Positions 14,143 through 37,456 of a DNA stretch of 64,000 nt are shown in pieces. The translations under genes were made by a program, and so were the position numbers. The notes under the pieces were generated by a model. The model was not told the origin of the DNA. It saw only the letters and a list, made by a program, of their open reading frames with translations, and ran no database searches. Position 1 is the first letter of the stretch. Each line of letters starts with the position of its first letter. The stretch covers positions 186,001-250,000 of the IMG/VR virus record IMGVR_UViG_3300017917_001342. One strand, given 5' to 3'.

Positions 14143-14888
14143 AAGCCAATGAATTCATTAACGAATCTATCAAATGGCAAGGCAACTCAGGTGCTACTCA
14201 AGCACGCCAAACTGATCATACTATTGAGGAAGCACGACGTTACGTTAAAGAAAACTATCCTCGAAATAAAACCTATACTATCAGCAGACTTGAACCAGGG
14301 TTTAGAGCATTGGATGCCAAAACCGGCTCTACTAATCCCAGTGCAGCAAATGCTACACTAAATCAAGAAGCAGCACTGAACCAGTTTGTTGAAATCTTTA
14401 AACTAAAACAAAATCCCTACATGAGCGGCAGCGAGCAAGTAACTGGCAGTATAGGATTCAGTTGGCATGTAGGTGAAGATAAAGAGCGCAAGCATGCCAT
14501 CTTCTATTATGAAGATCGCGGCATGGGCAATGACAGTATCACCATTGCTGCAAAAACCATTGTTGAACTCAAAGTAATGCAAGAAGTTCTTATTCATACA
14601 GGTCTTATCCCTGATCCTGATGAGGCCAAAGCAAAACGCACCGCTGACGCAGATAAACGTAGAGATGTACTTGCTAAAAAAGGCATTAAAATTGGTACTC
14701 GCATTACTGCTCGTAGACTAGACAACGGCGAAGTGTGGTTTGCTGGCAACGTAACTAGCATTGCACAAAACGGCTCTGTGGGTATTACTATTGATCAAGT
14801 AGATCCTGCTGTACAAGGTGTTACAGTTGGCAGTGTGTATAAAATGAAGCCAGGTAGTATTAGCAAAGACATGATCTCCAATGACTGA
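14139..14888 (+). CDS. Hypothetical putative internal virion protein
   Basis: Leader MKANEFINE/S closely resembles the T4 capsid-targeting sequence; beta-rich SH3/KOW-like C-terminus. Confidence 0.75.
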   Translation: MKANEFINESIKWQGNSGATQARQTDHTIEEARRYVKENYPRNKTYTISRLEPGFRALDAKTGSTNPSAANATLNQEAALNQFVEIFKLKQNPYMSGSEQVTGSIGFSWHVGEDKERKHAIFYYEDRGMGNDSITIAAKTIVELKVMQEVLIHTGLIPDPDEAKAKRTADADKRRDVLAKKGIKIGTRITARRLDNGEVWFAGNVTSIAQNGSVGITIDQVDPAVQGVTVGSVYKMKPGSISKDMISND

Positions 14889-14898
14889 TTATTTTCAA

Positions 14899-14913
14899 TA
14901 AATATCATAGGAG
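14899..14913 (+). promoter_or_regulatory. Late-type promoter TAAATA plus RBS
   Basis: ATAAATAT (core 14899-14904), AGGAG at 14909-14913. Confidence 0.7.
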
Positions 14914-14920
14914 ATTTATT

Positions 14921-15367
14921 ATGCGATTAGCAGATTTGTACGGCGACTTGTTTGAGTCTATCACAGCAGATGATATTAAAGATCCTATTTCCAAGGGACT
15001 AGTTCCTAATTTCATCCACAGTATGCCGTCTACTCATCTGCTAACAGGTATGGATCAATACTATCAATATTATAGATTCTTGATTGCCATTGCAGGTTAC
15101 CCGGAAGATTCCGACATACCATTAACTAGTGTTGTTAGGGATTGGCCTATGACAGTAGCATACACTACACAAGAAAAAGAAATGATAGATAAAGTTGCCA
15201 AACGTATGGGTATATCACCTACAGAAATTGCGTACGAAGGCAGTAAAGAATTACCCGATACCTACACTGTAAGTCCGGTAATGAAATTTTCAATGACTGA
15301 ATCTCAACACCGCAAATTAAAAAATCTAGCAGTTCTAACAGAGGCAATGATAAATGAAACTAAATGA
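14921..15367 (+). CDS. Hypothetical protein, paralogous to the N-terminal domain of the next gene
   Basis: Shared YRF, (A/G)YTxxE and VSPVMxFxM(T/S)E motifs with 15354..15752. Confidence 0.8.
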   Translation: MRLADLYGDLFESITADDIKDPISKGLVPNFIHSMPSTHLLTGMDQYYQYYRFLIAIAGYPEDSDIPLTSVVRDWPMTVAYTTQEKEMIDKVAKRMGISPTEIAYEGSKELPDTYTVSPVMKFSMTESQHRKLKNLAVLTEAMINETK

Positions 15368-17153: not shown

Positions 17154-17184
17154 TTAATGCTGCAACTGCACAACGGAGGTTGTA

Positions 17185-17355
17185 GTGACATTATCAGCTA
17201 GTGACAGAGAAACACTTGGACGTATATTGTTCGAAACTGTGTGTCCAAGTAGAAATTGGCTAGATGTGTTACCAATGGAACGTAGACAGTGGGTGGCAGG
17301 CGCTGTTAAAATATATACTTTTGATTTAGATCAAATACGGCACGGCAGATACTAG
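17185..17355 (+). CDS. Small hypothetical protein, 56 aa (GTG start, not in the ORF track)
   Basis: GGAGGT RBS, then MTLSASDRETLGRILFE...RHGRY*; fills the intergenic gap. Confidence 0.55.
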   Translation: MTLSASDRETLGRILFETVCPSRNWLDVLPMERRQWVAGAVKIYTFDLDQIRHGRY

Positions 17356-17366
17356 TTGTTTTAAAC

Positions 17367-17372
17367 TAAATA
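17367..17372 (+). promoter_or_regulatory. Late-type promoter TAAATA, 5 nt from the ATG
   Basis: CTAAATATCTGCATG. Confidence 0.7.
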
Positions 17373-17377
17373 TCTGC

Positions 17378-19693: not shown

Positions 19694-19694
19694 C

Positions 19695-21914
19695 ATGAAG
19701 TTAGATGATATATTTGAAGCAGGCCCAAAGATAGACAACATTCATGGTATGGGTGCTGTTGGTATAAGTGGTAATATCGACTACATGGGTTTACGAGTAT
19801 ACGTAAAACCCAGCGTGTTTCTCAAACTTGCATACAGTCATCCTAACCTTGATACTACATACATTCAACAACAGTTGTCGATTGGACAAGCTATCGGCGC
19901 ACCGTTTCTAAGTATTGCAATACCTGAATCGTGGATCAGTCCAGATTCACATTACGAAAAAGTTGTAGAAGGTGACCTAACTGATCCTGCTGAAATCACA
20001 GGTCATGAAGGTCGTCATCGCATGGCTGCTATATTGAAGGAGTACGGAGATGTTCCTGTTGAAACACATCTTGTGTTTAATGGTCTTCGTCGTCGTCATA
20101 TTACTGATAACATGATCGAACGACTAAACAGTGATATATTAAACGAACATGGTAAACTTCTAATAGGGCCATGGTTTAGTTTAACAGAAACTATCACCGA
20201 AGCCGATGCAGATTTTATCTATCGCAATTTTCTAAAAGACATTAACATATACGGTATAACAAAAGCATTACATAAAATTTCTCTACGTATTGAACGTGCT
20301 GATGCAGACGGTGAAGATCCAGAGACGACTAGAAGTATTTTAACTGATCACAAAGAGTTAATACTTAAAGAACTATTATCTTGGATAAAACTATGTGAAT
20401 ACAAAGAAGATATCTACGAAGTTATCAAAGCTATCAAGTATGTTAATAGTATAGGTATTGATTGGCCAGAATTTGAAACAATTAAAAAAGGCTGTAAAAG
20501 TATTGCCGCCTCGGCGCCGAGTAATCCTTTTCAACTTGGTTATCACGAAATTAATGAAAACTTTGCAGATGGCAAAGGACCAGGTAGACCCGGTGATAGT
20601 CGCAGACATGGTATACCCAAACATGCAACTCTGTCACAGTTAGATAAAATTGGTAAAGGGTCTGGACGTAAGGCGCAGCTAGCACGTTGGCAAGCAAATA
20701 TGCGTAGAGGTCGTGCTAAAGTTAACGAAAATGAACTAGGCAGCTACATGCCATTAGATATTGCACAACTTAAAGAATTACTATTAGTTGTGCAAGATCA
20801 ACAGGAAATTGTAGATGATCACAGTTTTGATGTAGAACCGGGAACCGTTGCATATAAGCAAATAGAACAGGAATATCGTGCATTAACTGCTATCGAATAT
20901 GTTGTAAAAAACAATATCAAAGCAATTAATAATCCCGAACTACAGCCAGGCGCTATTTTTGTATATGATTGGGAATACGATGATGCAATTGGTGCAGCTC
21001 AATTACAAGTAACTGGTACAGTGGCCGAATTGAAATGGTTAGGTAGCTATAACAGCTCTGGTAAGCAACTGATAAAGCAGGGATTGTCACATGCTAAAAC
21101 AATGGGTGCTAAGTCTGTTAATCTAACTAGCAAATGGGGCAGTGCTGAATACTATAAAAAGCAAGGCTTTACACCAAAAGATAATGTGGCAGATAACCCA
21201 ATAACAGATGTCGGTACATCATTTACAAAAGACATAGATGAAGCATCTCAACAGTATAAAAAGATCAGTCCTGAACTGATAAAAGACATTGTTGCAACTG
21301 TGCCACAGACTCGTGAAATATGGTTCCATGGTAGTAGAGCAACAGGCGCACATCGACGTGACAGTGATTGGGATATACTAGTAGTAGTACCAGATGACAT
21401 TAAAGGCAATACCTATATAGATATTATAGAACTGTTGCGTAACATAGAACGAAACTATCCGAACTACGATATACAACCTGCTCACCCACGTAATATGATC
21501 ACTAATATTGCTAGAGAAGAAGGTGTATTGTTGTGGTCACATAAACCGCCAGTTACTGAAGCCATTGCACCACATGGCGATTTTAACAACGAATTGCGCA
21601 TGATGAAAGCTGGTACTAAGCCTGCTGCAATAATTGATCCTATGGTATATGAACACATGTATAAACCATTGGTAAATGATTACGGATGGGAAGTGGTTAC
21701 ATTTAAAAACAATTATGGTCGTAGATACGTAGTAGGACAGATGGGCGAATATGCTCGTATTAAACGTATTGCTGATCTAGTTGACAACATGAATAAAAAA
21801 ATGGAACAAGGTGTTAAAGCAACACCTGAGTATCATATACAATTAGGTCGCTTACTAGGTTATAGTGAACAAGATATTGAAGATTTCTTAGAAAAAATTG
21901 CAATGAATTCTTGA
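19695..21914 (+). CDS. Multidomain protein: ParB/Srx-like + WPEL + basic peptide + GNAT + MNT nucleotidyltransferase + unknown domain
   Basis: HEGRHR; WPEF; GKQLI...AEYYKKQGF; FHGSRATG...DSDWDILVVV; GRLLGYS. Confidence 0.8.
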   Translation: MKLDDIFEAGPKIDNIHGMGAVGISGNIDYMGLRVYVKPSVFLKLAYSHPNLDTTYIQQQLSIGQAIGAPFLSIAIPESWISPDSHYEKVVEGDLTDPAEITGHEGRHRMAAILKEYGDVPVETHLVFNGLRRRHITDNMIERLNSDILNEHGKLLIGPWFSLTETITEADADFIYRNFLKDINIYGITKALHKISLRIERADADGEDPETTRSILTDHKELILKELLSWIKLCEYKEDIYEVIKAIKYVNSIGIDWPEFETIKKGCKSIAASAPSNPFQLGYHEINENFADGKGPGRPGDSRRHGIPKHATLSQLDKIGKGSGRKAQLARWQANMRRGRAKVNENELGSYMPLDIAQLKELLLVVQDQQEIVDDHSFDVEPGTVAYKQIEQEYRALTAIEYVVKNNIKAINNPELQPGAIFVYDWEYDDAIGAAQLQVTGTVAELKWLGSYNSSGKQLIKQGLSHAKTMGAKSVNLTSKWGSAEYYKKQGFTPKDNVADNPITDVGTSFTKDIDEASQQYKKISPELIKDIVATVPQTREIWFHGSRATGAHRRDSDWDILVVVPDDIKGNTYIDIIELLRNIERNYPNYDIQPAHPRNMITNIAREEGVLLWSHKPPVTEAIAPHGDFNNELRMMKAGTKPAAIIDPMVYEHMYKPLVNDYGWEVVTFKNNYGRRYVVGQMGEYARIKRIADLVDNMNKKMEQGVKATPEYHIQLGRLLGYSEQDIEDFLEKIAMNS

Positions 21915-21945
21915 TTCAATATCAAATATCTAACATGCTTGTGTT

Positions 21946-22788
21946 ATGACAACAGTATTATTCAGCATGCCTTGCCACGAAAGTCACGAGGCTATAAACA
22001 TAAACATTTCAAACCTGCGTCGTTTTAATGGACTGCAACATCCAGTTGTTATTCATGCAGATTCTGGATGGAACGAATTTGATCCAGAACGTGTAGATTT
22101 TTCCGATATCTACGTCAATCCAAGACGTTATAGAACACAACATGCACATAGTCAGATTACTACTCACATCAGTAACTACTTGACAGCAGTAGAACAAGGT
22201 GTCGAGTTTGATTACGTTGCAGTATTTCACACTAGCGAAATGTTTGTAAAACGTGGTATGCATGATCATATAGCACGATACGATTATGGTCTTTGGTTTA
22301 CACCAGACACCCAGCCTAAAGATTTTGGTTGGCCTCCTCTACGTAACGCTATAGAAATGAATATGTTTAAGGATCTGTTTCCTGCAAATGCAGTAGACAA
22401 CTATCTAGGTAATCTGCTAGAAGGCAGTTGGTGGAGCAGAGATCTTTTCAAAGAAATAGTAGATTGGACACTTTACCACTATGATCTCGAAGATCTTCGT
22501 TTACCATGGGCAGCAGAAGAATGTTTCTTTCCTACTCTTAGCTGGCATCTAAGCGGAGGTAAACGATTTACACATCCCTATTGCGCATTTCATCATCAAG
22601 ATCACTATGTACAAGATCGTACACTGATAGACAACATACGTGCAGGTAGAGATATCACCTGCTGGCAACCTCAGAATTTTGTCTACGATTGGAAACCTAT
22701 TTCTAGCGAAGGTTTTTATTCTGTTAAGCGTATCAGCAGAGACTTAGACGATCCAATTAGACATTATATAAGTTGGCTAAAGACATGA
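21946..22788 (+). CDS. Possible glycosyltransferase-like protein
   Basis: GT-A-like start (VLFSMPCHE...VVIHAD), FDYV, AEECFFPT. The ORF is solid but the function is weakly supported. Confidence 0.5.
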   Translation: MTTVLFSMPCHESHEAININISNLRRFNGLQHPVVIHADSGWNEFDPERVDFSDIYVNPRRYRTQHAHSQITTHISNYLTAVEQGVEFDYVAVFHTSEMFVKRGMHDHIARYDYGLWFTPDTQPKDFGWPPLRNAIEMNMFKDLFPANAVDNYLGNLLEGSWWSRDLFKEIVDWTLYHYDLEDLRLPWAAEECFFPTLSWHLSGGKRFTHPYCAFHHQDHYVQDRTLIDNIRAGRDITCWQPQNFVYDWKPISSEGFYSVKRISRDLDDPIRHYISWLKT

Positions 22789-22836
22789 TGTAATATTTGT
22801 TAAATATAGTTGAGAATTCACTCGACTGTTTTTTAA

Positions 22837-22842
22837 TAAATA
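22837..22842 (+). promoter_or_regulatory. Late-type promoter TAAATA, 5 nt from the ATG (second copy at 22801-22806)
   Basis: ATAAATATCATCATG. Confidence 0.7.
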
Positions 22843-22847
22843 TCATC

Positions 22848-23756
22848 ATGAGACTATTAGACATTTTCACCCCCGATTACCTCCTGGAAGACCTTGAAGG
22901 TCAAAAAGCCCAGCGTGGTCAATTTATCAAAGATAAACTAGGTAAAGACTTTAAAGGTCTACCTGGGTATGATGACATCGATAAGCTAATTGACAAAATT
23001 GGCGAAGTTGACCCGTCACGTAATGGCATTTACATGCCCTGGATCGCGCGGTTGGTAATCACTAAACCGGGCGAAAACCGATCTGAAGACCTTGATCGTG
23101 TTGGACAAGACTTGCAAAACTTTGAACAGTTTAAAGCACGTATTGCTAACAAAGATATTAACAGTTACAAGAGTTTCCAACAGCTCTATGACGTAATTGA
23201 ACCATTTACTAGACCACAGCCAAAAACTGCTGATCAAAAAGCCAAAGAAAAAGAAGCAGCAGAAATTGCTAAACTGAAGAATGAAATTATCACAGTTTAC
23301 AATGGTCCCGAAGGTTGGATACGTATTCCTAAAACACAAGCTGCTGCGGTGTATCTAGGTCGTGGTACTCGTTGGTGTACTGCTGCTGATCGCAACAACA
23401 TGTTTAATCACTATAGTAAAAACGATAACCTGTTTGTTGTACACGATAAAGCACAGGCCAAAGCCTACAGAGAGTTTATGGCAGACCCTGCTAATGCTGG
23501 TAAGCGTAAACCGCACAACGGTATGTATCAGATGCACATTGAAAGTGGACAGTTTGCGTCAGATGACGACAGCAATCAAGGTATGAATGCTGTACCAGAT
23601 TGGGCAAGAACTCCAATTCTTGATTACTACAAAGCTAACAATCCAAAACTAACTTGGAAGCAGATTATGACACTGAGTACATTCGGTGACGAAAATCTTG
23701 CTGCGGGTACAGAACATGAGGATCTAATCAACCTCATGAAAGCCTATGGTATCTAA
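22848..23756 (+). CDS. Hypothetical protein with PcfJ-like GxGTxWCT domain
   Basis: Start moved to MRLLDIF...LLE/D; IPKTQAAAVYLGRGTRWCTAA...FNHY motif. Confidence 0.65.
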   Translation: MRLLDIFTPDYLLEDLEGQKAQRGQFIKDKLGKDFKGLPGYDDIDKLIDKIGEVDPSRNGIYMPWIARLVITKPGENRSEDLDRVGQDLQNFEQFKARIANKDINSYKSFQQLYDVIEPFTRPQPKTADQKAKEKEAAEIAKLKNEIITVYNGPEGWIRIPKTQAAAVYLGRGTRWCTAADRNNMFNHYSKNDNLFVVHDKAQAKAYREFMADPANAGKRKPHNGMYQMHIESGQFASDDDSNQGMNAVPDWARTPILDYYKANNPKLTWKQIMTLSTFGDENLAAGTEHEDLINLMKAYGI

Positions 23757-23759
23757 ACA

Positions 23760-24788
23760 ATGCGCTTCGCTGAATTGCAACCTCACACTCAATTCAGCGA
23801 AGCTGCTCTCAACTCTGTAACACAGCGTTATATTGATTCACACATAAAACACTTACTATACAAAAAAGACCAGTATGGTCCTCGTAATGTACGTAAAGTT
23901 GTTGAATTCTTAACTGATTTACAAAATCGTTTTAAACGAGATGGCGATCCCACTACATTTGAAATCGCCGAAGTACTTGAACCATATAGACAAGATATTA
24001 TAAAGTACTTGTCTAATTTGTTTGATGGTGTACCAGACAGTTATACGCCTGTATTTCAAGCAGCTATATTAACTAATAGTGGTGTACACTGGCCGGAAAT
24101 AGTTGAAATATTTGAGCCTTATCGAGAACCTATTATTAAAAGAATACTACAAACTGTGCGACACGGTTACAGAGACAGTGATGTAGATTCTTGGGTGACA
24201 GCATTACGAGCAATTGGGGTTGATTGGCCAGAAGTAGATATCATAGAACGAAGCCGAAACGCTAGTAAACAAATCGATGAAAACAGCTTAGTTGCTGATT
24301 CGCATAGACAATATATGCTTGATAATATTAGAGACCGTCGGTTTCATATTATCTTTTCACAATTAATCACCTATTTCAAACCAGATCCAGTTATTGCAGA
24401 TGCATTAACTAAAAACAAATCTGTTGTGCTGCAATACATATCCGATGCAATTAAGAACGGGTATTTCTTAGGTGCTGCAAAATATCTTGTTGGTTTGCAA
24501 AATGTTGGTGTTGCGTGGCCGGAACTGGAAAACATTAAAACTGCAATAAAAGTACCGTGCATAACTCGTATGCTAACAATACTAAAAAAGTCTGATTACG
24601 ATAGAGACCATCTGACAAATATATTAGAAACAATAAAGTATTTGAGAAAAGCTGGACTTGATTGGCCTGAGTTAAAAATTATCAACGACGCAGCCGAAAC
24701 GGAACTTGATTATCATCCCGAAGATGAAGAAGAAGAATACATCGCAACTGATGACGATCGCGGCGACTACTACAGAGATCTCTATTAA
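23760..24788 (+). CDS. WPEL-module repeat protein (4 copies)
   Basis: WPEI, WPEV, WPEL, WPEL; internal IDE/N junction. Confidence 0.85.
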   Translation: MRFAELQPHTQFSEAALNSVTQRYIDSHIKHLLYKKDQYGPRNVRKVVEFLTDLQNRFKRDGDPTTFEIAEVLEPYRQDIIKYLSNLFDGVPDSYTPVFQAAILTNSGVHWPEIVEIFEPYREPIIKRILQTVRHGYRDSDVDSWVTALRAIGVDWPEVDIIERSRNASKQIDENSLVADSHRQYMLDNIRDRRFHIIFSQLITYFKPDPVIADALTKNKSVVLQYISDAIKNGYFLGAAKYLVGLQNVGVAWPELENIKTAIKVPCITRMLTILKKSDYDRDHLTNILETIKYLRKAGLDWPELKIINDAAETELDYHPEDEEEEYIATDDDRGDYYRDLY

Positions 24789-24795
24789 ACAACGA

Positions 24796-24801
24796 TAAAT
24801 A
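24796..24801 (+). promoter_or_regulatory. Late-type promoter TAAATA
   Basis: ATAAATAT in the intergenic gap before 24831. Confidence 0.65.
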
Positions 24802-24830
24802 TCCCTATAACAGCACGGGTATTTTTCTAA

Positions 24831-26198
24831 ATGCAGATACAGAGTTTAATGGAAGCAAAAAACATTCCGCCGGATGTAGCTGCAAAAATAGACAGCATAG
24901 TAAAATCCATGCTGAAAACTGGCTACATAGATGTGTGTGTAAGACGACTTGAAGATGAAGGTCTCACAGATGCTGGCATACTTGATGTGTTAACTCCACA
25001 TGCAGACAAGCTAGTAAATCTCATAACAAGTAAAAAGCATAAGACATTACCTGGTTATACAGTTTATGAGTTGCTATTACTATTAGGTATAGGAGCAAGA
25101 TGGCCGTCGTTAATTGCAGCACTTGCCAATAACAAAGAGTCAGTAATTAAGTACATTTTAACACAGTTTAAAGAATATTCTAACGATGATATCGAAATGG
25201 ATATAATAAATTTCGATATAAAAGTTTTGCAAAAATTAGGTATCGATTGGCCAGAATTAGCAGTTATAAAAAAATCTGTTGAAAACGAATTGGTAAGAAT
25301 GGGTCACCCGCCATCATTAATGGAAGCACAGCCTGTAATACCTCAAAAACTTATTAAAATATTCAACCAACATCTTAACAACATATATGAGCGCGGTATT
25401 GACAAGTTAGCGTATTTGATAATTGATATGAAAAATGCAGGTGCAACCGATCAACAGATTGCATCGCTTCTCAGTGAAAAGCGTCAAGAAATTGTAAAGA
25501 TACTCAGAAATACTATTCACAATGAATCTCCTAAAAACTGGAGAGCAATTAACGAATTTGCTGTTGCAATTGCGTCATTATTAGATCTTGGAATCAAATG
25601 GCCGCCATTATTAGAATTATTAAACTACTATCGAGATAAAATCGAAGCCTGGGCAATTGCTGCGGTATTTGATGCAGGATTTGGCAAGCATGTTGCTGAG
25701 AAATTACGTAAGTTTGAACAATTGGGTTTTGATATATTACCAATACGCCGAGCAATCAAAGCAAACATATTACCTACACTAAAAGAATATCTTACTAAAA
25801 ATGGTATTGATCATTATACAGTTGCTAAATTAGAGGCTATGCATAGACTAAATCTATTGCCTAAAGCTCTAGATGACAAAACTACTAAACTTGTTTTTGA
25901 TGCAATAGAAAACTCTATGAGCAAAGGTATGCCTAATGATTTCAAAAATGCATTGAAATATTTTGCAATGATGAACATACCAAATCTTGAATCAACCGTA
26001 AAAAGCATAGTAGAAGCTAATAAAACACCTGTTATAAAATCATTACTAACTGCTATGAAAACTGGTTTAGGTAATGCAAACAACTATTACACGTTACCAA
26101 CTTATTACATAGTAGATACACTACAGCTATTACATAAACTAGGTATACAGTGGCCAGAAATTGCTGCAATTACTAGAAGCTTGAAGGCAGGGCGTTGA
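24831..26198 (+). CDS. WPEL-module repeat protein
   Basis: WPSL, WPEL, WPPL, WPEI; leader MQIQSLME/A and internal SLME/A. Confidence 0.85.
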   Translation: MQIQSLMEAKNIPPDVAAKIDSIVKSMLKTGYIDVCVRRLEDEGLTDAGILDVLTPHADKLVNLITSKKHKTLPGYTVYELLLLLGIGARWPSLIAALANNKESVIKYILTQFKEYSNDDIEMDIINFDIKVLQKLGIDWPELAVIKKSVENELVRMGHPPSLMEAQPVIPQKLIKIFNQHLNNIYERGIDKLAYLIIDMKNAGATDQQIASLLSEKRQEIVKILRNTIHNESPKNWRAINEFAVAIASLLDLGIKWPPLLELLNYYRDKIEAWAIAAVFDAGFGKHVAEKLRKFEQLGFDILPIRRAIKANILPTLKEYLTKNGIDHYTVAKLEAMHRLNLLPKALDDKTTKLVFDAIENSMSKGMPNDFKNALKYFAMMNIPNLESTVKSIVEANKTPVIKSLLTAMKTGLGNANNYYTLPTYYIVDTLQLLHKLGIQWPEIAAITRSLKAGR

Positions 26199-26199
26199 T

Positions 26200-28059
26200 A
26201 TGGATATGTACGGCAACTGGGTTTATTCAGCTTTAAAAGACGTTGTTCGTCAACGTCAATACAAAGATGTGGCATTCAAACTACGTAATCTTGGTAGAGA
26301 AGGTGTGGCATTTGCTAAATCTGATGATACAACAGCATTGCTTAACGATCGCAAAGACAACTGTCTACGCGGTATACTGTTCATAATGAAGTATCACGAC
26401 GATTATGGTCTTTATGGTCAAGATTTTGTTGATATTGCCAACGGTGCTCGCAAGGTTGGGTTAAACTGGCCTGAATTGGACATTATTGAAAAGGCTGCTA
26501 AATCAATGCCCGAAAATCCATATATAGATGAAGCTATGCATATTGATTTAAAATCTAGTCGTGAACAGATATTAGATAAACTTGAACAGATATTCAATGA
26601 TCCCGGTACGGATGTATTTGATCGCATTGCTGAATTAGATATTGCTAGGAATGTGCTACGACGCATAGAAAAATCAGACGTTGCCGAAATATTAGCAAAA
26701 TACAAAACCAATATCATTAAAGACACTCTGCATTATATGCGGCACGGTGTAGTAGAAGTAGACATTCCTGTATATTTAGAAACACTTCAAGACCTTGGTG
26801 CAAACTGGCCCGAATTAACCATCATTATGAATAGTTTTAAAAAACCAAAAAACACACCATTAGATGAAAACGCACACGATGATTTAGATACAGTATTGGC
26901 ATCGTTAAAAGACGATGCAGTAGCAAGACCAATTAAAGTAGCTTTTAATAGAATGTCAAATGACATGGCTGAACACTACAACAGAAAACCTATTTTGGAT
27001 TTTCTAAAATTTGTTGATCGCTACAAACCCTACATCGGCGACGAAAATATACACTTAATAGTAAATGCTACTAAGCAGAAAATGTTAGAATATATAGAAT
27101 GGGTGATAAGCAACTATTCTAAACCGTTTGCAGATCTCACTTTAACCGAACCGCTGTCTAACACATTAAAATCTATTGCATGGTTAAAACATCACTACGG
27201 CATAACATGGCCAGAGTTAAGCACTGTGCTGAATACCTATAAGACTGGTATAATAAAAACCTGTTTGAAACAGGCTAAGGATGCAAATAGCTACAGCATC
27301 GAAGACTTAGAAGATCTCATAACACACCTAGACGCTATAGGAGTCAACTGGCCTGAAATTGCTACTATCAAAAAAAGTGTGTTTACCCAACTAGACGAAA
27401 GCATAAACATGACTGACCATGGTGTCGCCATGATACTGAATAGTTTAGAAGATCAGCATTTTGATGACATACCCTATGCATTGGCAATTATTGGCGATGC
27501 AGACAGGCGTGCTAATTATGGGCTTGTGCCAGCGTTTGACGAAAACAAAACAGAAATAATGCGTGTTATATTAAAAGCAATACGCGATCCAGATGAATAT
27601 AATCTTTGGTTTCCAGAAGCATTTGAAAAAATGATACGAGGTGCAAGACTGCTTGGTATAGATTGGCCTGAATTTAAAGCTATTGAACGCAGCATCGGCT
27701 CAGATGAATTAGACGAAGGTGAAGCGGGTAATTCTGCAATGCAGTATAACCTAAGCGGTGTGCTGTCTAGTATTAAACATGACGAACCTAGAGAAATGGT
27801 ATTGTTCCTAAGTCAATTGGTTTGGATTGACAAATGGGGACTTGCAGAGTTAACAGACTACTCAAAAGAATTGACTCCGCACATCAAATTTATAGTAAAA
27901 GCCCTACTTGAATTTTTAAAATACGAATCAGATGATGCAGAACCAATAGACACTGTTAGAGACTGTCTAAGAGTATTAGAAAAGATGAATGTATCAAGCC
28001 CAGACTTGGACATAATTAAACGCAGTTTAGCAGTAGGAAAAGTCAATGACCAGCAGTAA
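26200..28059 (+). CDS. WPEL-module repeat protein (5 copies plus 1 degenerate)
   Basis: Modules separated by IDE/A, LDE/N, LDE/S, LDE/G. Confidence 0.85.
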   Translation: MDMYGNWVYSALKDVVRQRQYKDVAFKLRNLGREGVAFAKSDDTTALLNDRKDNCLRGILFIMKYHDDYGLYGQDFVDIANGARKVGLNWPELDIIEKAAKSMPENPYIDEAMHIDLKSSREQILDKLEQIFNDPGTDVFDRIAELDIARNVLRRIEKSDVAEILAKYKTNIIKDTLHYMRHGVVEVDIPVYLETLQDLGANWPELTIIMNSFKKPKNTPLDENAHDDLDTVLASLKDDAVARPIKVAFNRMSNDMAEHYNRKPILDFLKFVDRYKPYIGDENIHLIVNATKQKMLEYIEWVISNYSKPFADLTLTEPLSNTLKSIAWLKHHYGITWPELSTVLNTYKTGIIKTCLKQAKDANSYSIEDLEDLITHLDAIGVNWPEIATIKKSVFTQLDESINMTDHGVAMILNSLEDQHFDDIPYALAIIGDADRRANYGLVPAFDENKTEIMRVILKAIRDPDEYNLWFPEAFEKMIRGARLLGIDWPEFKAIERSIGSDELDEGEAGNSAMQYNLSGVLSSIKHDEPREMVLFLSQLVWIDKWGLAELTDYSKELTPHIKFIVKALLEFLKYESDDAEPIDTVRDCLRVLEKMNVSSPDLDIIKRSLAVGKVNDQQ

Positions 28060-29227
28060 AAACGCAGATGAATTAATTGCTGATCGTATGGACGGTTTAA
28101 AAAAGCAAGAACCTCTAGCACTTAGAGGATTAATCCATAATCTAAAGAGCAGACCCTATGAATGGTACGATGATGATATTGCTGCACTGTTAGAAGAATA
28201 CAAAGCTGACATATTAAAATACATCACACGCAAATATCATGTGGGCCAGATATCATTACCAACTAATGATATTAAAAAGCTAATGAGTGTTGGAATACAA
28301 TGGCCTGAATTAACTGATCTTGTCAACCGATACAAAACAGCTATTATCAAAAATGTACTAGAAACTCTTAAGCTAGATTACAGAAACGTAGCTGACACTG
28401 TAGGTACGTTGACTAGTATGAATCTCGGTTGGAAAGAATTAGACGCAATTAATCGTAGCTTAAATGCACTGCGTAATAATGTAAACGAAGCTTTAAAGTA
28501 TGATAACAATGAAATAGAAGAACTCAAAACTAACATAATTCAAGACCTACATGACGGATATTATAGAGATGCGTTAGATGTCATAGCAACACTGTGGCAT
28601 GACAATAGTAATCTTGGCGACGTAACTGCTATAACACGTTTATTGGAAAAACATAAACGTGGGTTGATTACACAGTTATTAACTGTAATCAAATATAGTA
28701 GCACTTACGAATTAAGCAAATATTTTAAAGATTTTATTAAAGGACTACAAGATTTTGGGATTGATTGGCCAGAATTCGACGCTATGTTAAAATCGATCAA
28801 CGCTGACAAAACAACACTTGATGAATCTTATTCAAAAAACGATGCAGAACAGTATAAGGATGAAATCATTAATACCATTAAGAAGGATGATATGGATGAT
28901 TTGTTTGAAATGCTTGCTGAGTTTGCATGGATACCGAGAGCACTTGTAGGCGATGTTACAAAACTAAATCGTATACTAGAACTACACAAAGTTCGAGTAA
29001 TAAAAGCATTACTGTCTTATATGCGAGAGCTAGATGACAGCGGTATTTGCTACATCATGCCACAAATTCTAGGCGGTTTAGAACATGCTGGCATAAATTG
29101 GCCCGAGTTAAAAATTATAGATCAAAGTGTTGACAAAATACAAAAACGTCGCGAAGCCGAAGATGACGATTTGTATGAGAGTAGCAAAGCAGTAAATACT
29201 ACTGCAAAAAAGGCTCGCAGACGATGA
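28046..29227 (+). CDS. WPEL-module repeat protein
   Basis: WPEL, WKEL, WPEF, WPEL; junctions VNE/A, LDE/S, LYE/S. Confidence 0.85.
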   Translation: MTSSKNADELIADRMDGLKKQEPLALRGLIHNLKSRPYEWYDDDIAALLEEYKADILKYITRKYHVGQISLPTNDIKKLMSVGIQWPELTDLVNRYKTAIIKNVLETLKLDYRNVADTVGTLTSMNLGWKELDAINRSLNALRNNVNEALKYDNNEIEELKTNIIQDLHDGYYRDALDVIATLWHDNSNLGDVTAITRLLEKHKRGLITQLLTVIKYSSTYELSKYFKDFIKGLQDFGIDWPEFDAMLKSINADKTTLDESYSKNDAEQYKDEIINTIKKDDMDDLFEMLAEFAWIPRALVGDVTKLNRILELHKVRVIKALLSYMRELDDSGICYIMPQILGGLEHAGINWPELKIIDQSVDKIQKRREAEDDDLYESSKAVNTTAKKARRR

Positions 29228-31533
29228 CACCTCATGAAATTCGCGTAACTCTAAATTTCTTCTTAGAAGATCTACAAGAAGAACGTTACATTGATGCTGT
29301 CAATGGTCTGATAGAATTGTATGCCTATACCAATTCTGATTATCCTCCATATGCTGATCGTAAAAACCAAATACCCTTTGACAAAATCAGCGAATTACTA
29401 CAACAGCATAAAACTGGTATTGTAAAACGCTTGTTGCGTTACATGAAGCATTATGATGCAGATGAAGTAAAACGATTTGTGTTGCTTGCTATCAATGCAT
29501 TAAAACACTTTGGTATAGATTGGCCTGAACTAGCTGTTATGAAAAACAGCGTTTCGCCGGAAGTTGAAGAATCCTGGAGCAACAAATATAAGAAAAGCAT
29601 CAATTGCAGCAATCCAAAAGGTTTTAGTCAACGTGCGCACTGTGCTGCTAGACGTAAGCGCAAAGCTGGCGGTAAGACTAAGAGCAAGCCAGTGAGAGAA
29701 GCATTGAGTTCGCCGCTGGGAGGTATTGTGCTGTCAATGCAAGACGCATTGCGAAAAGGCAGTGATGCCGCAGTATCGCATCGTGTTATTGACCTTTGGC
29801 GTGCTAACACAGCAGAACGACAGCGTGCAAGCGATATGCTAGCAGATGTAGAACACTTGGTAACAAGTTATGTAGAACGTCATCTCGGTTCAGAAAATCA
29901 TTTAGATGTACAAGACGGCTTGAACATGCTTCAAGTTTTACCACCAAGTGAAGATTGGGCAGACTTGCAAGTGTTATTAAACAAATACAAAACCAACATA
30001 CTAAAGTATTTGTTAAAGTGCATGAAGGATAATGATATAGATATACCTCATTATCGAATACCTGTGTTGAAAAAATGGGGCACAGATTGGCCAGAACTGG
30101 ACACAATCTACACCAGTGCTGATTCAGAATTGAAAAAACAAAAACGTATAGACGAGGGTGTTATTGCCTATCATGCTAGCCCGGTTGCTACAATTCGCAG
30201 CAAACGTTTTTGGCCATTTACACATTTTGGCAGTGAAAAAGCCGCAGCAGATCGTATCAAATATCTAAAGAAAACAGGCGAACTTGCAAAGGACTCGCCA
30301 GTCAGAGTCTATCAAGTTGAACTCAATATCAACAATCCCGCTGTAATCAAAGATGAACCTGTGCAACACAGTGCAACACAGTTTGCATTTGCATTGAAAA
30401 AGGCCAAGCTGATTTCTCAAGAGGAAATGGAAAGCATCACAAAACTTGGACACGATCCTGTTACCTATAAGCCTACTATGAGTTACGCTGATGCTGAAAA
30501 GCAACGCAATCGTAAATTGAGAGCATTGATGCGTAGCAAAGGCTTTGACGGATTTGCGTATGTGAATCGCTTTGAAGACAAAGGCAGTATGAGCTATGTC
30601 ATACTGGATCCCGCACAAGCTAGAACATTGCGACCAGTTAAAGCAGCGCCCGCAGAATTAAAAGAAGATGAACGCAACAATTTTTCCACAGTGTTTAGAA
30701 ATCGTTCTGAACAAGAAGGTGGTCACCGTTTTACACTCAATGCAGATGAATATGTAGAACATATAGAAAAACTCTTAAAATATGGAATGCTAGCAACTGA
30801 TAATGTAGTGATAGAATTAGCTACGCTGGGTCGACGCAGGCCCGATGCAATTAAAAATTGGCCAGAACTAGCTAACTTATTAAATCAACACAAAGATGAG
30901 TTGATGCGCATTATACAACATCACTTTAATAAAGACGTTACCAGTGAGCATGCAATGGCTCGCAGTGTTGATGTTGCAGGTGCATTAAAGCTAATTGGTA
31001 TAGACTGGCCAGAAATCGCTCAGCTTATTGAAAAGAACAAGCACAAAATAGTCAAAACACTGCTTGAGTTTATGCGAGATGAATATGACGCCCATATCCC
31101 ATACGAACTTAAAACACTGCGTAGCTATGGTGCAGATTGGCCAGAGTTAGCAGTAATTGAAAAAAGCCTAAACGCAGGATTGAATGAATCAAAGTCTAAC
31201 AAATTACCGCAGGACGTTACTGACATGGTAATGGACATGCTTAAACGAGATGGCACAGGCATCGCACTGTATCATATTTGGGAATGGAAATTAGACATAG
31301 ATAAACTGCCAGAATTAGAAGAATTCCTAAACGACCGCAAGCAAACCTATATGGAAATTATGTTGAAAAACATGAAGATGGGCGGAGACGCACTATACGG
31401 TACAGAACAGTATTTAGAACGTTTAGAAGGTACTAAAATAAATTGGCCTGAACTCAAAGTCATACGTAATAGCTTAAATAAGCTATTAGCAGAATTGCAT
31501 GCGTCGGAAGAACATCCAAATGAAAACCATTGA
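29224..31533 (+). CDS. Multidomain protein: WPEL modules + basic Cys peptide + ADP-ribosyltransferase (ART-PolyVal-like)
   Basis: AYHAS...THFG...VYQVELNINNP...KGFDGFAYVNRFED...SYVILDPAQ; six WPE[LI]; TAAATA at 29193-29198 upstream. Confidence 0.85.
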   Translation: MTPHEIRVTLNFFLEDLQEERYIDAVNGLIELYAYTNSDYPPYADRKNQIPFDKISELLQQHKTGIVKRLLRYMKHYDADEVKRFVLLAINALKHFGIDWPELAVMKNSVSPEVEESWSNKYKKSINCSNPKGFSQRAHCAARRKRKAGGKTKSKPVREALSSPLGGIVLSMQDALRKGSDAAVSHRVIDLWRANTAERQRASDMLADVEHLVTSYVERHLGSENHLDVQDGLNMLQVLPPSEDWADLQVLLNKYKTNILKYLLKCMKDNDIDIPHYRIPVLKKWGTDWPELDTIYTSADSELKKQKRIDEGVIAYHASPVATIRSKRFWPFTHFGSEKAAADRIKYLKKTGELAKDSPVRVYQVELNINNPAVIKDEPVQHSATQFAFALKKAKLISQEEMESITKLGHDPVTYKPTMSYADAEKQRNRKLRALMRSKGFDGFAYVNRFEDKGSMSYVILDPAQARTLRPVKAAPAELKEDERNNFSTVFRNRSEQEGGHRFTLNADEYVEHIEKLLKYGMLATDNVVIELATLGRRRPDAIKNWPELANLLNQHKDELMRIIQHHFNKDVTSEHAMARSVDVAGALKLIGIDWPEIAQLIEKNKHKIVKTLLEFMRDEYDAHIPYELKTLRSYGADWPELAVIEKSLNAGLNESKSNKLPQDVTDMVMDMLKRDGTGIALYHIWEWKLDIDKLPELEEFLNDRKQTYMEIMLKNMKMGGDALYGTEQYLERLEGTKINWPELKVIRNSLNKLLAELHASEEHPNENH

Positions 31534-34171
31534 TTTAAACATATTTTTAGAAGCTCAAGGTCCTGCAAAGATACCAACTGGTTCTGGTAAGTCCACTATT
31601 GCAAACCCTGCGCATTCTCCCGGTAGCTATTACGAAGGTGATCCTGCTAACTTTGATTTTGGTGCACAGCGTAGAAACTACCAAGCATTAAATGCCGCAT
31701 TGGCACGTAACGGTAAAAAGCTTAATTACATCGGTGTTTCCAAAGCAGATAGTGGTAGAGACACCTTTGTTGCAACTGCACCCGGTGTTGTATGGTACAA
31801 ATACGAAGGCAGCAATCCACAGTCTGGACAAAACATACTCTACATCAACGGTGTTAAAGACAAGTTTACGTCATTTATGGCATTGTCGCCAGAGGAACAA
31901 GACAAGAAACTGTCTGCAAGTCCTGCTGCATTGAGTTTACAAAAAGGTGATGTGTTTGGTTATATCAATGCACTGGCTGCGTCAGATGCGCCTGCAAACA
32001 CTGTTGTTGACAGTTTGAATCAAAACAAAGATTTGATACTGCAACGAATAGCAAACGAACTGTTAAACTACCCAAAATACATATCTAAGATAAAAACCTT
32101 TAATAAAGCATTGGCTAACAAAGGTGCGTTGCTACCATGGTTAACAGTTGACGAAATTTTAAAAGCAATCCAGCCTGTGATATCGAAAGATCTGTTCGAC
32201 TATTTTTTAAGGTGGCCAAGTACAGATTCATTGAAACGTATCAAATCTGCAATCGCAGTTGGATTGCTGTTTGACATGTCTTATATGCAAGAATTGACCA
32301 ATAACAATGTTGATGGGTTTGTCGAACGCTTTTCTAGTCCCGGCATGTTTACCGGACCAGGATATCGCATGGTAGACAACCTAATAGAATTTCTAACTCT
32401 TGTACGCTACAGTAACCCACGATTAGAAGTTAAGAATCTAATTGACAATGTGGATTATAAGCGCATTGTAAAATATTTAAACGATTCTAGCAATGTAACA
32501 GGAAATGTATATCAAGCTGCTAAACTGTTGTTAAATGCAGGATTTCCAAAAGATCGCATTGTACAGGCATTTGAAGATCTAAAAGAAGAAATGGTTGGCA
32601 ATGCACTGCTTAAATTAGTTAGAACTGCTAGAGTTGATGATATTGGAAATCTCAATGCAGCACTTAATATACTTGGTATATCATGGCCCGAAATTGTTGG
32701 GGATAATATACGTAAGCTGATTGAAAATAACAAAACTAATATTATTAAAACTATACTTACTAATGTAAAAAATGGAGTTTTTCAAAATGCGTTAAATGCT
32801 GTCGATTTCTTTATAGATAACGACTACAAATGGCCAGAGCTAGCTGCAATAAAACGAAGCTTAATCGCTTCACTAAATAACCGAACAGACGAAACACGCA
32901 ACAGTTTGAGTAACAATATGAAAATCGACGAAGTTGAACAATTAGACGAGGACCTTGGTAATCTAAATCAGCTAGGTATGGGTCCGCTGCTTAATGTACT
33001 CAAACAGGAGCATTGGAGTCGCCGAAATTACGATCCAGAGATACGTCCGGTCGGCAAGCGTTTTGTTGGATCGGGCTATGACCGACGAGTAGGTCCTAAC
33101 AGCGAAATACAAGACATTGGTGCAGTAAAAGACATTCTTAAATCTCTACGTAAAGCATTTAAAACCACAGCAGCCGTTGCATTTGCACTATATATAGGCG
33201 GCAAACCTGTGATGTTTGGTGTCACAGATGAATATACACTAGCAGGCAGCAGTCGTCATGGTAAAATTGCCTACGATCTAACACCCTGGGCAGAAACTGT
33301 TAAGCTGTATGATCAGCAACAAAAAGGTCGCTACGCACCTAGTACACAGTTGACAACTATGCGTGACAAAGAAGAACGCAATTACAGTGATCCACGCGAC
33401 AAATGGGATACTCCTGTAATGGTTACTCAAAAATACGCAGGTGATATGATATCAACTGGCGACTTGTCAACTATTGCAAAAGTAATTGAATTTATTTCTG
33501 CTAACACAGGCGAACCTATCACAGCTAAGTTAGTAATGAAAGACGAAGCTGGCTTTGAAAAAATGAAAAGCCGACAGATCAATCATGTTGCAGTTCGCAG
33601 TGCAGCAGAAGATCTCAAGCATAGACTAAGTGTTTACAAGAACAGCAAAAAACCATCTGTAGATACTATTGAAGATTTTATTGCTATGAGCCTTAGAAAA
33701 CCAGGCAGTGTAGTTCAGTTTGCAGGTGTACCATATCGTTTAACTGCAACCAGCTACGATAAAATAGAACCAGTATCTTTGCTATCAGGTAAAGAGTTTA
33801 GCACAGATTATAAAAGCAATCTCAAGGACGATTATCATAACAGTGTTAGGATCTATTACAGATACGACAAAGACACTAATCAATTGTTGCCGATATATGC
33901 CGAATGGTATGACAAAACTGATCCAAATAACCCATCATATCAACGAGTATCTGCTGTTCTAGATGGCAAAGGTTATATCAAAAGTAGACTAAAAGTGCAG
34001 TCGCTAACAAAAGAAGCGGTGATACCAAAAATATTAGAGAAGATTAAATCGTCGCAATTCAAAGATGCATTGTTATATGTTCAGGCATTGCAAAAAATGG
34101 GTATGGACTGGCCAGAGTTAAGTGTTATTGAACGCAGTGCAAATGCTGAATTAAACAAGCCGAGAGACTGA
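31520..34171 (+). CDS. Large WPEL-module protein, apparently a fusion of two genes
   Basis: Start moved to MKTIDLNIFLE/A; internal TAAATA (32874) and in-frame MKIDEVEQLDE/D at 32918; both halves end in WPEL. Confidence 0.8.
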   Translation: MKTIDLNIFLEAQGPAKIPTGSGKSTIANPAHSPGSYYEGDPANFDFGAQRRNYQALNAALARNGKKLNYIGVSKADSGRDTFVATAPGVVWYKYEGSNPQSGQNILYINGVKDKFTSFMALSPEEQDKKLSASPAALSLQKGDVFGYINALAASDAPANTVVDSLNQNKDLILQRIANELLNYPKYISKIKTFNKALANKGALLPWLTVDEILKAIQPVISKDLFDYFLRWPSTDSLKRIKSAIAVGLLFDMSYMQELTNNNVDGFVERFSSPGMFTGPGYRMVDNLIEFLTLVRYSNPRLEVKNLIDNVDYKRIVKYLNDSSNVTGNVYQAAKLLLNAGFPKDRIVQAFEDLKEEMVGNALLKLVRTARVDDIGNLNAALNILGISWPEIVGDNIRKLIENNKTNIIKTILTNVKNGVFQNALNAVDFFIDNDYKWPELAAIKRSLIASLNNRTDETRNSLSNNMKIDEVEQLDEDLGNLNQLGMGPLLNVLKQEHWSRRNYDPEIRPVGKRFVGSGYDRRVGPNSEIQDIGAVKDILKSLRKAFKTTAAVAFALYIGGKPVMFGVTDEYTLAGSSRHGKIAYDLTPWAETVKLYDQQQKGRYAPSTQLTTMRDKEERNYSDPRDKWDTPVMVTQKYAGDMISTGDLSTIAKVIEFISANTGEPITAKLVMKDEAGFEKMKSRQINHVAVRSAAEDLKHRLSVYKNSKKPSVDTIEDFIAMSLRKPGSVVQFAGVPYRLTATSYDKIEPVSLLSGKEFSTDYKSNLKDDYHNSVRIYYRYDKDTNQLLPIYAEWYDKTDPNNPSYQRVSAVLDGKGYIKSRLKVQSLTKEAVIPKILEKIKSSQFKDALLYVQALQKMGMDWPELSVIERSANAELNKPRD

Positions 34172-34174
34172 TCT

Positions 34175-35437
34175 ATGAAGATTACAGAGTTATCAGAGGC
34201 TGTAGAATTACCGCCAGATGTTATAGAACAACTTAACGGTTTATTAATTAAACCATTGCGTGATACTCTGATAAGACGTATGGCATATCCAAATCTCTAT
34301 TACATAATTGATACATTTGAAGATATGCTTGCTGATAAAAAATATGCCAAGTCGCCGCGTCGTAAACAGGCAATTGCGTTGCTATTTCCATATGTTTTGC
34401 AAGCATTAGATGAGATTATCAAAAATGCCAAAGCAGACGGTAGCTATTATCCTTTCACTAGAATAGTCAAGCTACTGAGATACAGCATAGACAACGAAGC
34501 TGTTGCAGAAGTTTTAGAAAACAACAAAGGCAAACTCTTACAGATATTAAAAGCCTTTATTGACAAAACTCACAAATCTGCACATAACGTTGGACGAAAT
34601 GCCGACGAGAGTGCAATTGTAGATATTGTCAATGCTCTTGATCATGCAGGCATTGATTGGATAGAACTCAAAGACCTATATAAACAACATTTCTATAATC
34701 GCTATAGCGGCTGGTTAAGTCAATCGCAAGACAAATGGGGTACAAATACTGTATTCAATGTGTTAAACGACATGAGTAGGCACAAACTCACTATAGATGA
34801 TCTCAACGAAGAACTAGCGAACCGTTTACAGTCTATGAAATCAACAATATTAAACAGATCACTGTTTAATTTTAGACATGATTCTGTGCGATACGGTTTG
34901 GTAGAAATGGGAGACTACTATAAAAAACTGCGACGTCTTGGGTTCGATTGGCCTGAATTACAAATATCTAGCTTAGATCAATTCAAAACACCTATCATGC
35001 GTGAGTTACTGACACTGTTTAAAGAACAAAACGTAGGCCGCGCAGCAAAAATAGTAGCAGAATTAAAGCAGGCAACAGATTGGCCAGAACTAGCTGCTAT
35101 GGAACGATCACTAGGTGCTAAACAACTTGATGAAGAACTGCACCCTGCACGTATCAAAGCAGTTGATGAATCTCTGCGCAACGGTGATTATATAGGTGCT
35201 GCACATTATATGGGTGTGTACGGTGTCAACATAGATGAGTTCGACAAGCGTGTTCGTGAACGATTTGAAGAAATGAAACCAGAAATCATTCGTGAAATGC
35301 TACAGCTTGTCAAAAACATTTCGCTCGATCGTGGTTATCGAATAATGGACAATGTTCGTAAAGCTGGACTAGGTTGGCCAGAGATTGATATCATATTCAA
35401 AAGTCTAGACAAGTCCTACACTGAACGATACCGTTAA
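34175..35437 (+). CDS. WPEL-module repeat protein
   Basis: Leader MKITELSE/A; WIEL, WPEL, WPEL, WPEI; LDE/E junction. Confidence 0.85.
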   Translation: MKITELSEAVELPPDVIEQLNGLLIKPLRDTLIRRMAYPNLYYIIDTFEDMLADKKYAKSPRRKQAIALLFPYVLQALDEIIKNAKADGSYYPFTRIVKLLRYSIDNEAVAEVLENNKGKLLQILKAFIDKTHKSAHNVGRNADESAIVDIVNALDHAGIDWIELKDLYKQHFYNRYSGWLSQSQDKWGTNTVFNVLNDMSRHKLTIDDLNEELANRLQSMKSTILNRSLFNFRHDSVRYGLVEMGDYYKKLRRLGFDWPELQISSLDQFKTPIMRELLTLFKEQNVGRAAKIVAELKQATDWPELAAMERSLGAKQLDEELHPARIKAVDESLRNGDYIGAAHYMGVYGVNIDEFDKRVRERFEEMKPEIIREMLQLVKNISLDRGYRIMDNVRKAGLGWPEIDIIFKSLDKSYTERYR

Positions 35438-37421: not shown

Positions 37422-37456
37422 AAGCGAGCAAGTAACTTTGCTCGCTTATTTTATTT
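37422..37456 (+). terminator. Intrinsic terminator
   Basis: AAGCGAGCAA-GTAACT-TTGCTCGCTT then ATTTTATTT. Confidence 0.8.

Follow-up and report, generated by a model that had tools for sequence, protein, structure and literature searches.

A divergent ART-PolyVal-type domain, predicted to be an ADP-ribosyltransferase, among the WPEL modules of a late-type megaphage gene block

Among the macromolecule-modifying domains that large phages are believed to inject into their hosts, ADP-ribosyltransferases (ARTs) are the most common. Does a megaphage gene built largely from a helical repeat of no named family also encode such an enzyme, and could the enzyme travel with the phage DNA? The question is raised by the gene of a 769-residue modular protein (P0002) in positions 186001–250000 of the virus record IMGVR_UViG_3300017917_001342, which at 518,643 bp and with direct terminal repeats is a megaphage. 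This stretch of 64,000 nucleotides (nt) is called the window, and coordinates refer to it unless record positions are stated. The initial annotation of the window had placed an ART cassette, inserted among repeats named WPEL modules, at 30157–30666. The interval is stop-free in frame 1 of the plus strand, and its 170 codons are residues 312–481 of the 769-residue open reading frame (ORF). Residues 310–473 are, as argued below, a divergent but intact member of the ART-PolyVal family with a secure ART fold, and we give a little better than an even chance to the whole reading that they form an NAD+-dependent ART, encoded in a late-type operon and packaged and injected in the manner of polyvalent proteins or of T4 Alt.

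Membership of the ART-PolyVal family, which the initial annotation had read from a pattern of motifs, was confirmed through intermediates and fold and not by a direct Pfam match. When the family model (PF18760, gathering cut-off 31.2 bits) was searched against the window copy, as the initial annotation had suggested, neither the protein nor the isolated domain was matched at E <= 1. Scanned directly with Pfam and PHROG, the protein and the domain likewise gave no ART match, the only results being weak PHROG matches to proteins of no assigned function; a DHquinase_I match in the repeat region was spurious. A word-seeded search recovered 763-residue orthologues with 80–82% identity across the searched region, the two closest relatives being 80–85% identical over the ART domain, together with 1137-residue relatives that combine WPEL modules with a C-terminal DUF5661 and proteins of 447–488 residues, all 47–50% identical over the domain. 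Three relatives (P0008, P0011 and P0012; 45–46% identical over the domain in alignment A2) score 32.3–33.8 bits on PF18760, above the cut-off. Relative P0003, 82% identical to the window copy, reaches just 14.5 bits. Searching with the domain only added eleven stand-alone proteins of 137–162 residues with 45–51% identity, and PF18760 recognises all eleven.

The same connection was obtained on a larger scale. A profile built from the eight closest domains found 2079 relatives at E <= 1e-3, of which 560 at E <= 1e-10, among 1.84 billion representative proteins; they range from solo proteins of 140 residues to giants of 1.7–4.7 thousand residues, and two of the giants carry ART-PolyVal together with LPD38, a domain of polyvalent proteins. 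PF18760 matches 57 of the 71 domain segments that were aligned (best E 1e-16). In the reverse direction, a profile of 65 relatives, from which the window copy and its five closest kin had been excluded, scored 158.8 bits on residues 310–473 (E 6e-45, taking 1e6 sequences as the search space), a resemblance well outside what chance would give. The homology is unambiguous and, on these sequence comparisons, membership is solid. The failure of PF18760 on the window copy is best explained by insertions in its clade, which lie after strand 1, before strand 3 and, with about 16–24 residues, in the helical part; an entire megaphage subclade escapes the standard model. Among 50,697 deposited phage genomes, neither megablast nor tblastn recovered a relative of the gene or its WPEL part, the three weak matches (E 4e-3) being of a C-terminal motif to cyanophage polyvalent-type proteins, and a whole-protein scan of IMG/VR viral contigs found no further relative.

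The predicted structure agrees with this placement. From the 71-row alignment AlphaFold2 produced a model with pLDDT 90.9 and pTM 0.83 (an earlier run with eight sequences, pLDDT 65.5, was not used), in which a strand is followed by a short strand and a helix, a strand, three helices and three strands. In the PDB, Foldseek matched the model best to a cyanophage A4 pre-ejectosome chain (E 6e-7) and then to the anti-CRISPR protein AcrIF11 (6KYF), MbcT, RES-Xre, NatT, ParT and the catalytic domain of diphtheria toxin, and VIA-align gave Z 7.1–7.8 to PARP13, the tankyrases, PARP1/2, MbcT, diphtheria toxin and ParT. When 48,161 representative chains were scanned exhaustively without Foldseek, Z >= 5 was attained by only 41, and 28 of the top 29 belong to the ART superfamily. 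Among the viral predicted structures of BFVD there were 68 matches at E <= 1e-3; some bear the names "ART-PolyVal-like" or "large polyvalent protein associated domain", and an N4-like virion RNA polymerase is also among them. Since the family profile found nothing significant among PDB sequences, the fold assignment rests on the predicted structure; nevertheless, the nearly exclusive list of ART matches and the sequence family together make the modelled fold secure, as the initial annotation had supposed.

The motifs quoted in the initial annotation were all found again codon by codon: AYH (with H317), HFG (residues 334–336), L-N-I-N-N-P (367–372) and GFDG (440–443). Also present is E451-D452 followed by K-G-S-M-S-Y-V-I-L-D-P-A-Q, with the trivial correction that the spacing is E-x6-Y (or D-x5-Y) and not E-x5-Y. 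Ten residues are invariant in all 71 aligned sequences (H317, H334, F335, G336, A341, D377, Y446, N448, E451 and S457) and the window copy keeps every one of them, in addition to D452, G440, D442, G454 and Q465, which are kept in at least 90% of the alignment. Because the ten family-invariant residues are all retained, the domain is probably catalytically active. By its position in the model, H317, in the sequence AYHAS where the family consensus is YHGT, would be the H of the R/H-G-S/T motif of ARTs, and the short HFG strand would take the place of the Y-x-x / S-x-S motif that binds NAD+ in other ARTs (motif table of ART classes in PMC7955679). S457, at the front edge of strand 5, appears to occupy the position of the catalytic Glu of PARP- and diphtheria-type enzymes.

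The describers of the family gave its configuration as H on strand 1, Y on strand 2 and D on strand 5 (PMC5512222), most likely H317, Y363 and D462 here. The window copy has both Y363 and D462, which within the family are kept in 52 and 46 of the 71 sequences, less than H334, F335, G336, Y446, N448, E451 and S457. Given this lower conservation, the loop pair E451-D452 would be a better candidate for the catalytic acid than the D of the published triad. The analogy is with AcrIF11, whose key residues are H-F-H-D instead of H-Y-Y-E and which has an acidic D115/E116 loop (bioRxiv 10.1101/2024.08.26.609590); the residues to compare in the window protein are H317, F335, Y363 and E451-D452. Our mapping onto PARP, diphtheria toxin and AcrIF11 used secondary-structure position, published motif tables and the sequences of those enzymes, and is a lead only.

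A Ser where a canonical Glu is expected, together with the missing Pfam match, might suggest that the domain is a catalytically dead module, kept for structure or binding as one more part of a repeat protein. However, the same Ser is found in 71 of 71 relatives, including members that score up to 1e-16 on the Pfam model, so it is the norm of the family and not a loss. Moreover, all the other invariant residues are kept, as is close identity over the domain in the two nearest relatives. We regard a dead module as extremely unlikely.

What the enzyme might do with NAD+ can be approached from the structural matches. With the PARP and diphtheria toxin enzymes (the H-Y-E clade) the domain shares the split-sheet ART fold and the YHG[ST] motif on strand 1; it differs from them in the invariant Ser at the strand-5 Glu position, in another helical insert and in an identity of 10–15%. 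MbcT, RES-Xre and NatT are also among the matches (Z 6.1–7.4), and a weak RES match was seen in one relative. A glycohydrolase or phosphorylase that degrades NAD+ as the RES/MbcT toxins do, with no transfer to a macromolecule, would fit these matches, but the RES/MbcT signature of Arg on strand 1, Glu and Ser is not found, as strand 1 has the invariant His, and no RES family match was found for the window copy. The PARP and diphtheria toxin matches are equal or higher, and the phage carries NAD+ salvage genes (PnuC-like and NadR-like) that fit upkeep of NAD+ and not its destruction. This alternative is quite unlikely.

The nature of the acceptor was left open by the initial annotation. The invariant His residues of strands 1 and 2 (H317 and H334) recall the H-H-h clade, in which TRPT1 has the motifs HGT / HLA (PMC7955679), and DarT (Z 4.9) and a complex with ADP-ribose/phospho-adenosine (9ld3, Z 6.0) are among the matches. 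A nucleic-acid target, either a DNA base as for DarT or an RNA/DNA terminal phosphate as for Tpt1/KptA, is nevertheless very unlikely in our estimation: PARP, diphtheria toxin, ParT and AcrIF11 all match better, and the describers placed the family with the protein-modifying H-Y-[EDQ] enzymes (PMC5512222). On account of the PARP/diphtheria/AcrIF11-like fold, a protein is the more likely target.

Two of the structural matches deserve comment. The best is the A4 pre-ejectosome (PDB 9K3A chain B, residues 1419–1653; VIA Z 7.8 over 149 residues, root-mean-square deviation 6.0 Å), where the matched region is a domain of a large protein physically inside the capsid, an ejection protein of a podovirus. 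Judging from residue numbering, the chain is probably gp27. The family profile has no sequence match to it at E <= 10, and the published description of the pre-ejectosome names no ADP-ribosyltransferase-like domain; should the match hold, an ART-like domain inside a capsid has already been imaged. The second, AcrIF11, shares the ART fold (Foldseek E 9e-4, VIA Z 5.8) and is a proven ADP-ribosyltransferase whose target is Asn250 of Cas8f (bioRxiv 10.1101/2024.08.26.609590). It differs from the window domain in having no detectable sequence homology to it and in being a small stand-alone protein expressed in the cell.

Regarding T4 Alt, the initial annotation was right to place it in a different clade. 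Alt is an R-S-E enzyme (PMC5512222), the window copy has the strand-1 His, and PF03496 finds nothing in the genome. The likeness lies in the proposed role only, that of an ART which is synthesised late, enters the prohead and reaches the host along with the DNA, and in genome context, where a T4-type prohead protease, a late sigma factor and, in neighbouring genes, an Alt-like leader are found. Packaging and processing are proven for Alt and proposed for the window protein.

The domain does behave as a cassette. It occurs alone, in giant proteins with LPD38 and here between two N-terminal and four C-terminal WPEL modules, and WPEL modules occur without it, so the initial description of a cassette inserted among them was accurate. 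The borders lie where they had been drawn, at IDE|G (309–311|312) and LKE|D (479–481|482), and the genome holds only one copy of the domain. WPE[LIVMF] motifs are at residues 100 and 289 on the N-terminal side and at 546, 595, 639 and 741 on the C-terminal side. Homology through intermediates, fold, conserved motifs and the habit of a shuffled phage cassette are all shared with the ART-PolyVal domain as described (PF18760; Iyer et al. 2017, PMC5512222). The carriers differ. Polyvalent proteins typically have MuF, zincin metallopeptidase, ArdC or LPD domains (PMC5512222), while the window protein has six WPEL modules and no MuF, metallopeptidase or LPD. Among its relatives, P0005, P0006 and P0018 bear the ART domain and a C-terminal DUF5661, a domain that is not in the window protein; P0005 and P0006 also have WPEL modules, and P0018 reads GNAT, ART and DUF5661, with the GNAT–ART pairing as noted for polyvalent proteins. 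The gene neighbourhoods of P0007, P0012 and P0006 are mixed.

Could such a protein be made late and packaged? One gene of the phage specifies a prohead protease of the T4 gp21 type (Peptidase_S77, 88.8 bits; phrog_207 head maturation protease, 1.6e-57) and adjoins the major head, scaffold-like and portal genes; another specifies a gp55-like late sigma factor (6e-84; record positions 419800–420666, minus strand). The T4 late promoter is TATAAATA. In its exact form it stands before just 11 genes of the megaphage, and the shorter TAAATA[TA] is the enriched form, 14–17-fold in upstream intergenic DNA. This motif is found within 80 nt upstream of 63 genes genome-wide, at distances of 10–48 nt and with a peak at -21 to -40 from the start; the protease and portal genes, with their neighbours, are among these. 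Across the window it is depleted (20 copies, 36.9 expected), and nine of its 11 plus-strand copies there stand no more than about 40 nt before a gene start; the starts concerned in the WPEL block are 14921, 17378, 24831, 31499 and 35445. It is probably a late promoter read with the gp55-like sigma factor. The copy before the gene at 24831 probably drives a tightly packed unit of four genes (24831–31533), the ART gene being the last, where the operon structure is taken from overlapping or abutting ORFs. No TTGACA-type motif was found upstream of the block genes; that class does precede minus-strand genes at 43–56 kb of the window. With TAAATA[TA] before both block and head genes, the analogy with the T4 late promoter suggests that the ART operon is expressed late together with the head genes.

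Sites for processing can be proposed as well. T4 gp21 cuts at sites of the type [LIVM]-x-E. The I-D-E immediately before the domain and the L-K-E in the linker after it are candidates for the prohead protease of the megaphage. Within the 15 residues before strand 1, [LIVM]-x-E is found in 40 of 91 family domains (background 19%), and after the domain in 53 of 83 members (background 32%), counts that are drawn from related sequences. Cutting at both flanking sites would release 170 residues, about the size of the stand-alone homologues.

We infer the following course for a packaged enzyme. The protein would be synthesised late and then loaded into the prohead, where the T4-type protease would possibly free the domain at the flanking [LIV]-x-E sites. 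Delivered with the DNA, the enzyme would come into action as the next infection begins: NAD+ may be held by H317 together with the H334-F335-G336 strand, an acid of the loop that precedes strand 5 (E451, with D452) may activate the bond between ribose and nicotinamide, and ADP-ribose would be passed to a host macromolecule. For the Alt-like packaging and injection we find the case circumstantial but coherent, and on genome sequence it is plausible, at about an even chance.

Several observations weigh against this proposal. Regarding the enzyme, PF18760 found nothing at E <= 10 anywhere in the six-frame translation of the genome, all structural Z values are below 8, a middling range by the tool's own scale, and with Ser at the canonical position of the catalytic Glu the mechanism would not be the textbook one. 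Regarding the carrier, the Pfam scan of P0002 showed none of the domains that mark the described polyvalent proteins (MuF, metallopeptidase, LPD) and no other head-anchoring domain; P0002 has one recognisable enzymatic domain, where a polyvalent protein carries several effector domains in one large polypeptide; and it does not have the leader M-[KR]-x-x-[DE]-[LIF] of its neighbours. About 190 kb separate the gene from those of the head, and it is set between NAD-salvage genes and the DNA polymerase gene. Finally, [LIV]xE is a frequent tripeptide whose enrichment is no proof of cleavage, and the conserved Glu before strand 1 may have no role beyond the fold itself.

Some of these points would be expected if the enzyme were active but never packaged, working in the infected cell on a host or defence protein as T4 ModA/ModB or AcrIF11 do, with the WPEL modules serving target recognition or localisation and not capsid loading. 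The missing head-anchoring domain and leader, the distance from the head genes and the nearness of replication and NAD-metabolism genes all favour this alternative, and the second-best Foldseek match, AcrIF11, is a proven intracellular ART. On the other hand, the operon has the promoter motif of the head genes and no sigma-70-like TTGACA, virion-delivered polyvalent proteins are the typical setting of the family (PMC5512222; the LPD38 giants), and the best structural match is a pre-ejectosome protein. We consider an unpackaged enzyme doubtful, although it is a serious alternative to the packaged ART-PolyVal enzyme.

The carrier is better understood within its gene block, in which 11 co-directional genes hold 35 WPEL modules in all; four solitary modules lie elsewhere in the genome. 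The module has about 50 residues, is predicted to be helical and ends in G-[IV]-D-W-P-E-L-x-x-I-x-[KR]-S. Look-up in the ESM Atlas returned generic TPR/helical-repeat similarity only (TM 0.5–0.64 over about 90 residues) and no named family. Its homologues are all unnamed metagenomic proteins (35 clusters, on contigs of up to 193 kb), and none was found in deposited phage genomes. A syntenic block that includes the ART gene is present on a metagenome contig of 21.5 kb. Other cassettes sit in separate neighbouring genes and not, as in polyvalent proteins, in the same polypeptide: a Pol-beta nucleotidyltransferase in 19695–21914 (+; 33.9 bits), a GNAT in 17378–19693 (+; a weak match below the cut-off, E 0.007) and CTP_transf_like, cytidylyltransferase-like, in 15354–17153 (+; 36.9 bits), a gene with no WPEL modules. 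ARTs, GNATs and Pol-beta nucleotidyltransferases are three of the four classes of protein-modifying domains listed for polyvalent proteins (PMC5512222). Nine block genes begin with the leader M-[KRQ]-x-x-[DES]-[LIMF] (e.g., M-K-L-N-D-L-F-E), which is found in 12 of about 507 ORFs elsewhere. It resembles the N-terminus of T4 Alt, taken from the T4 record, and by that analogy could be a capsid-targeting leader.

Taken as a whole, the 22-kb block might be a "disaggregated polyvalent protein", in which the giant polypeptide is replaced by 11 paralogous WPEL genes: a late array of eleven helical-repeat carriers, some with ART, Pol-beta or GNAT-like cassettes, where WPEL modules and leader would load the prohead, the protease would trim at [LIV]-x-E and the free enzymes would be injected. 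This wider reading is speculative and, in all its parts together, rather improbable. If true, megaphages would have a previously undescribed means of packaging a mixture of effectors, with WPEL as a new kind of repeat that serves capsid loading or an internal body.

ARTs have been reported in over 40% of jumbo phages (PMC9503650), and the ART-PolyVal family has been known since 2017 (PMC5512222); for both reasons the domain itself is to be seen as a new divergent member of a known family. What is new is the carrier, that is, WPEL repeats and polyvalent-type cassettes spread over an array of paralogous late-type genes, and the array weighs more than the single copy of the enzyme. If its proteins are capsid-loaded carriers of effectors, the polyvalent idea extends from one giant polypeptide to modular paralogues, and the array would offer a way to learn what megaphages bring into the cell as infection begins. 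To our knowledge, almost no member of the ART-PolyVal family has been assayed and no target has been established, and this copy, compact, clearly delimited and about 170 residues long, is a convenient construct for an assay. The features described above are collected in Table 1.

Table 1. Positions in the window of the ART gene, its parts and the related features of the gene block
Feature	Position (nt)	Strand	Basis or remark
Intact gene of the 769-residue modular protein P0002	29224..31533	+	ATGA overlap of start codon with the upstream stop codon
WPEL helical module 1, residues 60–113	29401..29562	+	Module hidden Markov model (HMM)
Basic two-Cys linker motif, residues 118–157	29575..29694	+	Single copy in genome
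WPEL helical module 2, residues 249–302	29968..30129	+	Module HMM
I-D-E just before the domain, candidate prohead protease site ([LIV]-x-E, cut after E)	30148..30156	+	Glu invariant in 8 closest relatives
ART-PolyVal-family ADP-ribosyltransferase domain (predicted), residues 310–473	30151..30642	+	Leave-out profile, AlphaFold2 model, ART-fold matches
H317, invariant strand-1 His (AYHAS; family consensus YHGT)	30172..30174	+	71/71; model strand 6–13
H334-F335-G336, invariant short strand 2, then helix	30223..30231	+	71/71 each; secondary structure
E451 (invariant) and D452 (67/71), loop before strand 5	30574..30579	+	Best candidates for the catalytic acid
S457, invariant Ser, front edge of strand 5	30592..30594	+	71/71; model strand 149–153
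L-K-E in low-confidence linker after the domain, second candidate site	30658..30666	+	pLDDT 53–73 at C-terminal end
WPEL modules 3–5, back to back, residues 506–559, 555–604 and 599–652	30739..31179	+	Module HMM
WPEL module 6, residues 701–754	31324..31485	+	Module HMM
Block of co-directional genes, 11 with 35 WPEL modules in all	12961..35437	+	Module HMM
Leader-bearing gene starts	12961, 14139, 14921, 15354, 17378, 19695, 23760, 24831, 34175	+	N-terminal pattern
TAAATA[TA] copies	7882, 14899, 17367, 22801, 22837, 24796, 31475, 35435, 41751	+	Motif search
TAAATAT promoter-like motif, 35 nt upstream of gene 24831	24796..24802	+	Motif search

Some minor features of the protein and of its surroundings were also noted. 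The linker motif between WPEL modules 1 and 2 reads W-S-N-K-Y-K-K-S-I-N-C-S-N-P-K-G-F-S-Q-R-A-H-C, followed by a run of Lys/Arg; no family was matched by residues 118–157, and a comparable basic stretch lies immediately before the ART domain of the relative P0005. About 25 kb upstream of the gene for the presumably NAD+-consuming ART is a phage NAD+ salvage pair, composed of a PnuC-like transporter of nicotinamide riboside/nicotinamide mononucleotide (3630–4298, +; 1.4e-27) and a NadR-like nicotinamide-nucleotide adenylyltransferase (4291–5334, +; 1.8e-64). One Macro-domain gene is present in the genome (record positions 134621–134956), and neither a NADAR domain nor an Alt/VIP2 domain was found there. 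At the start of the window is a gene for a Lon-like ATP-dependent protease (238–2370, +; phrog_4871, 2.6e-175). The 1708-residue ORF at 7833–12959 (+) showed only DUF6861, just below the cut-off, and small C-terminal PHROG matches; its GTG start at 7833 is doubtful, as the TAAATAT at 7882 lies inside the ORF and an in-frame Met follows about 30 codons downstream. Beyond the block, a strong terminator-like hairpin of 11 pairs followed by a T run (37422–37447, +) divides the WPEL genes and the two genes after them from the DNA polymerase gene at 37543–40311.

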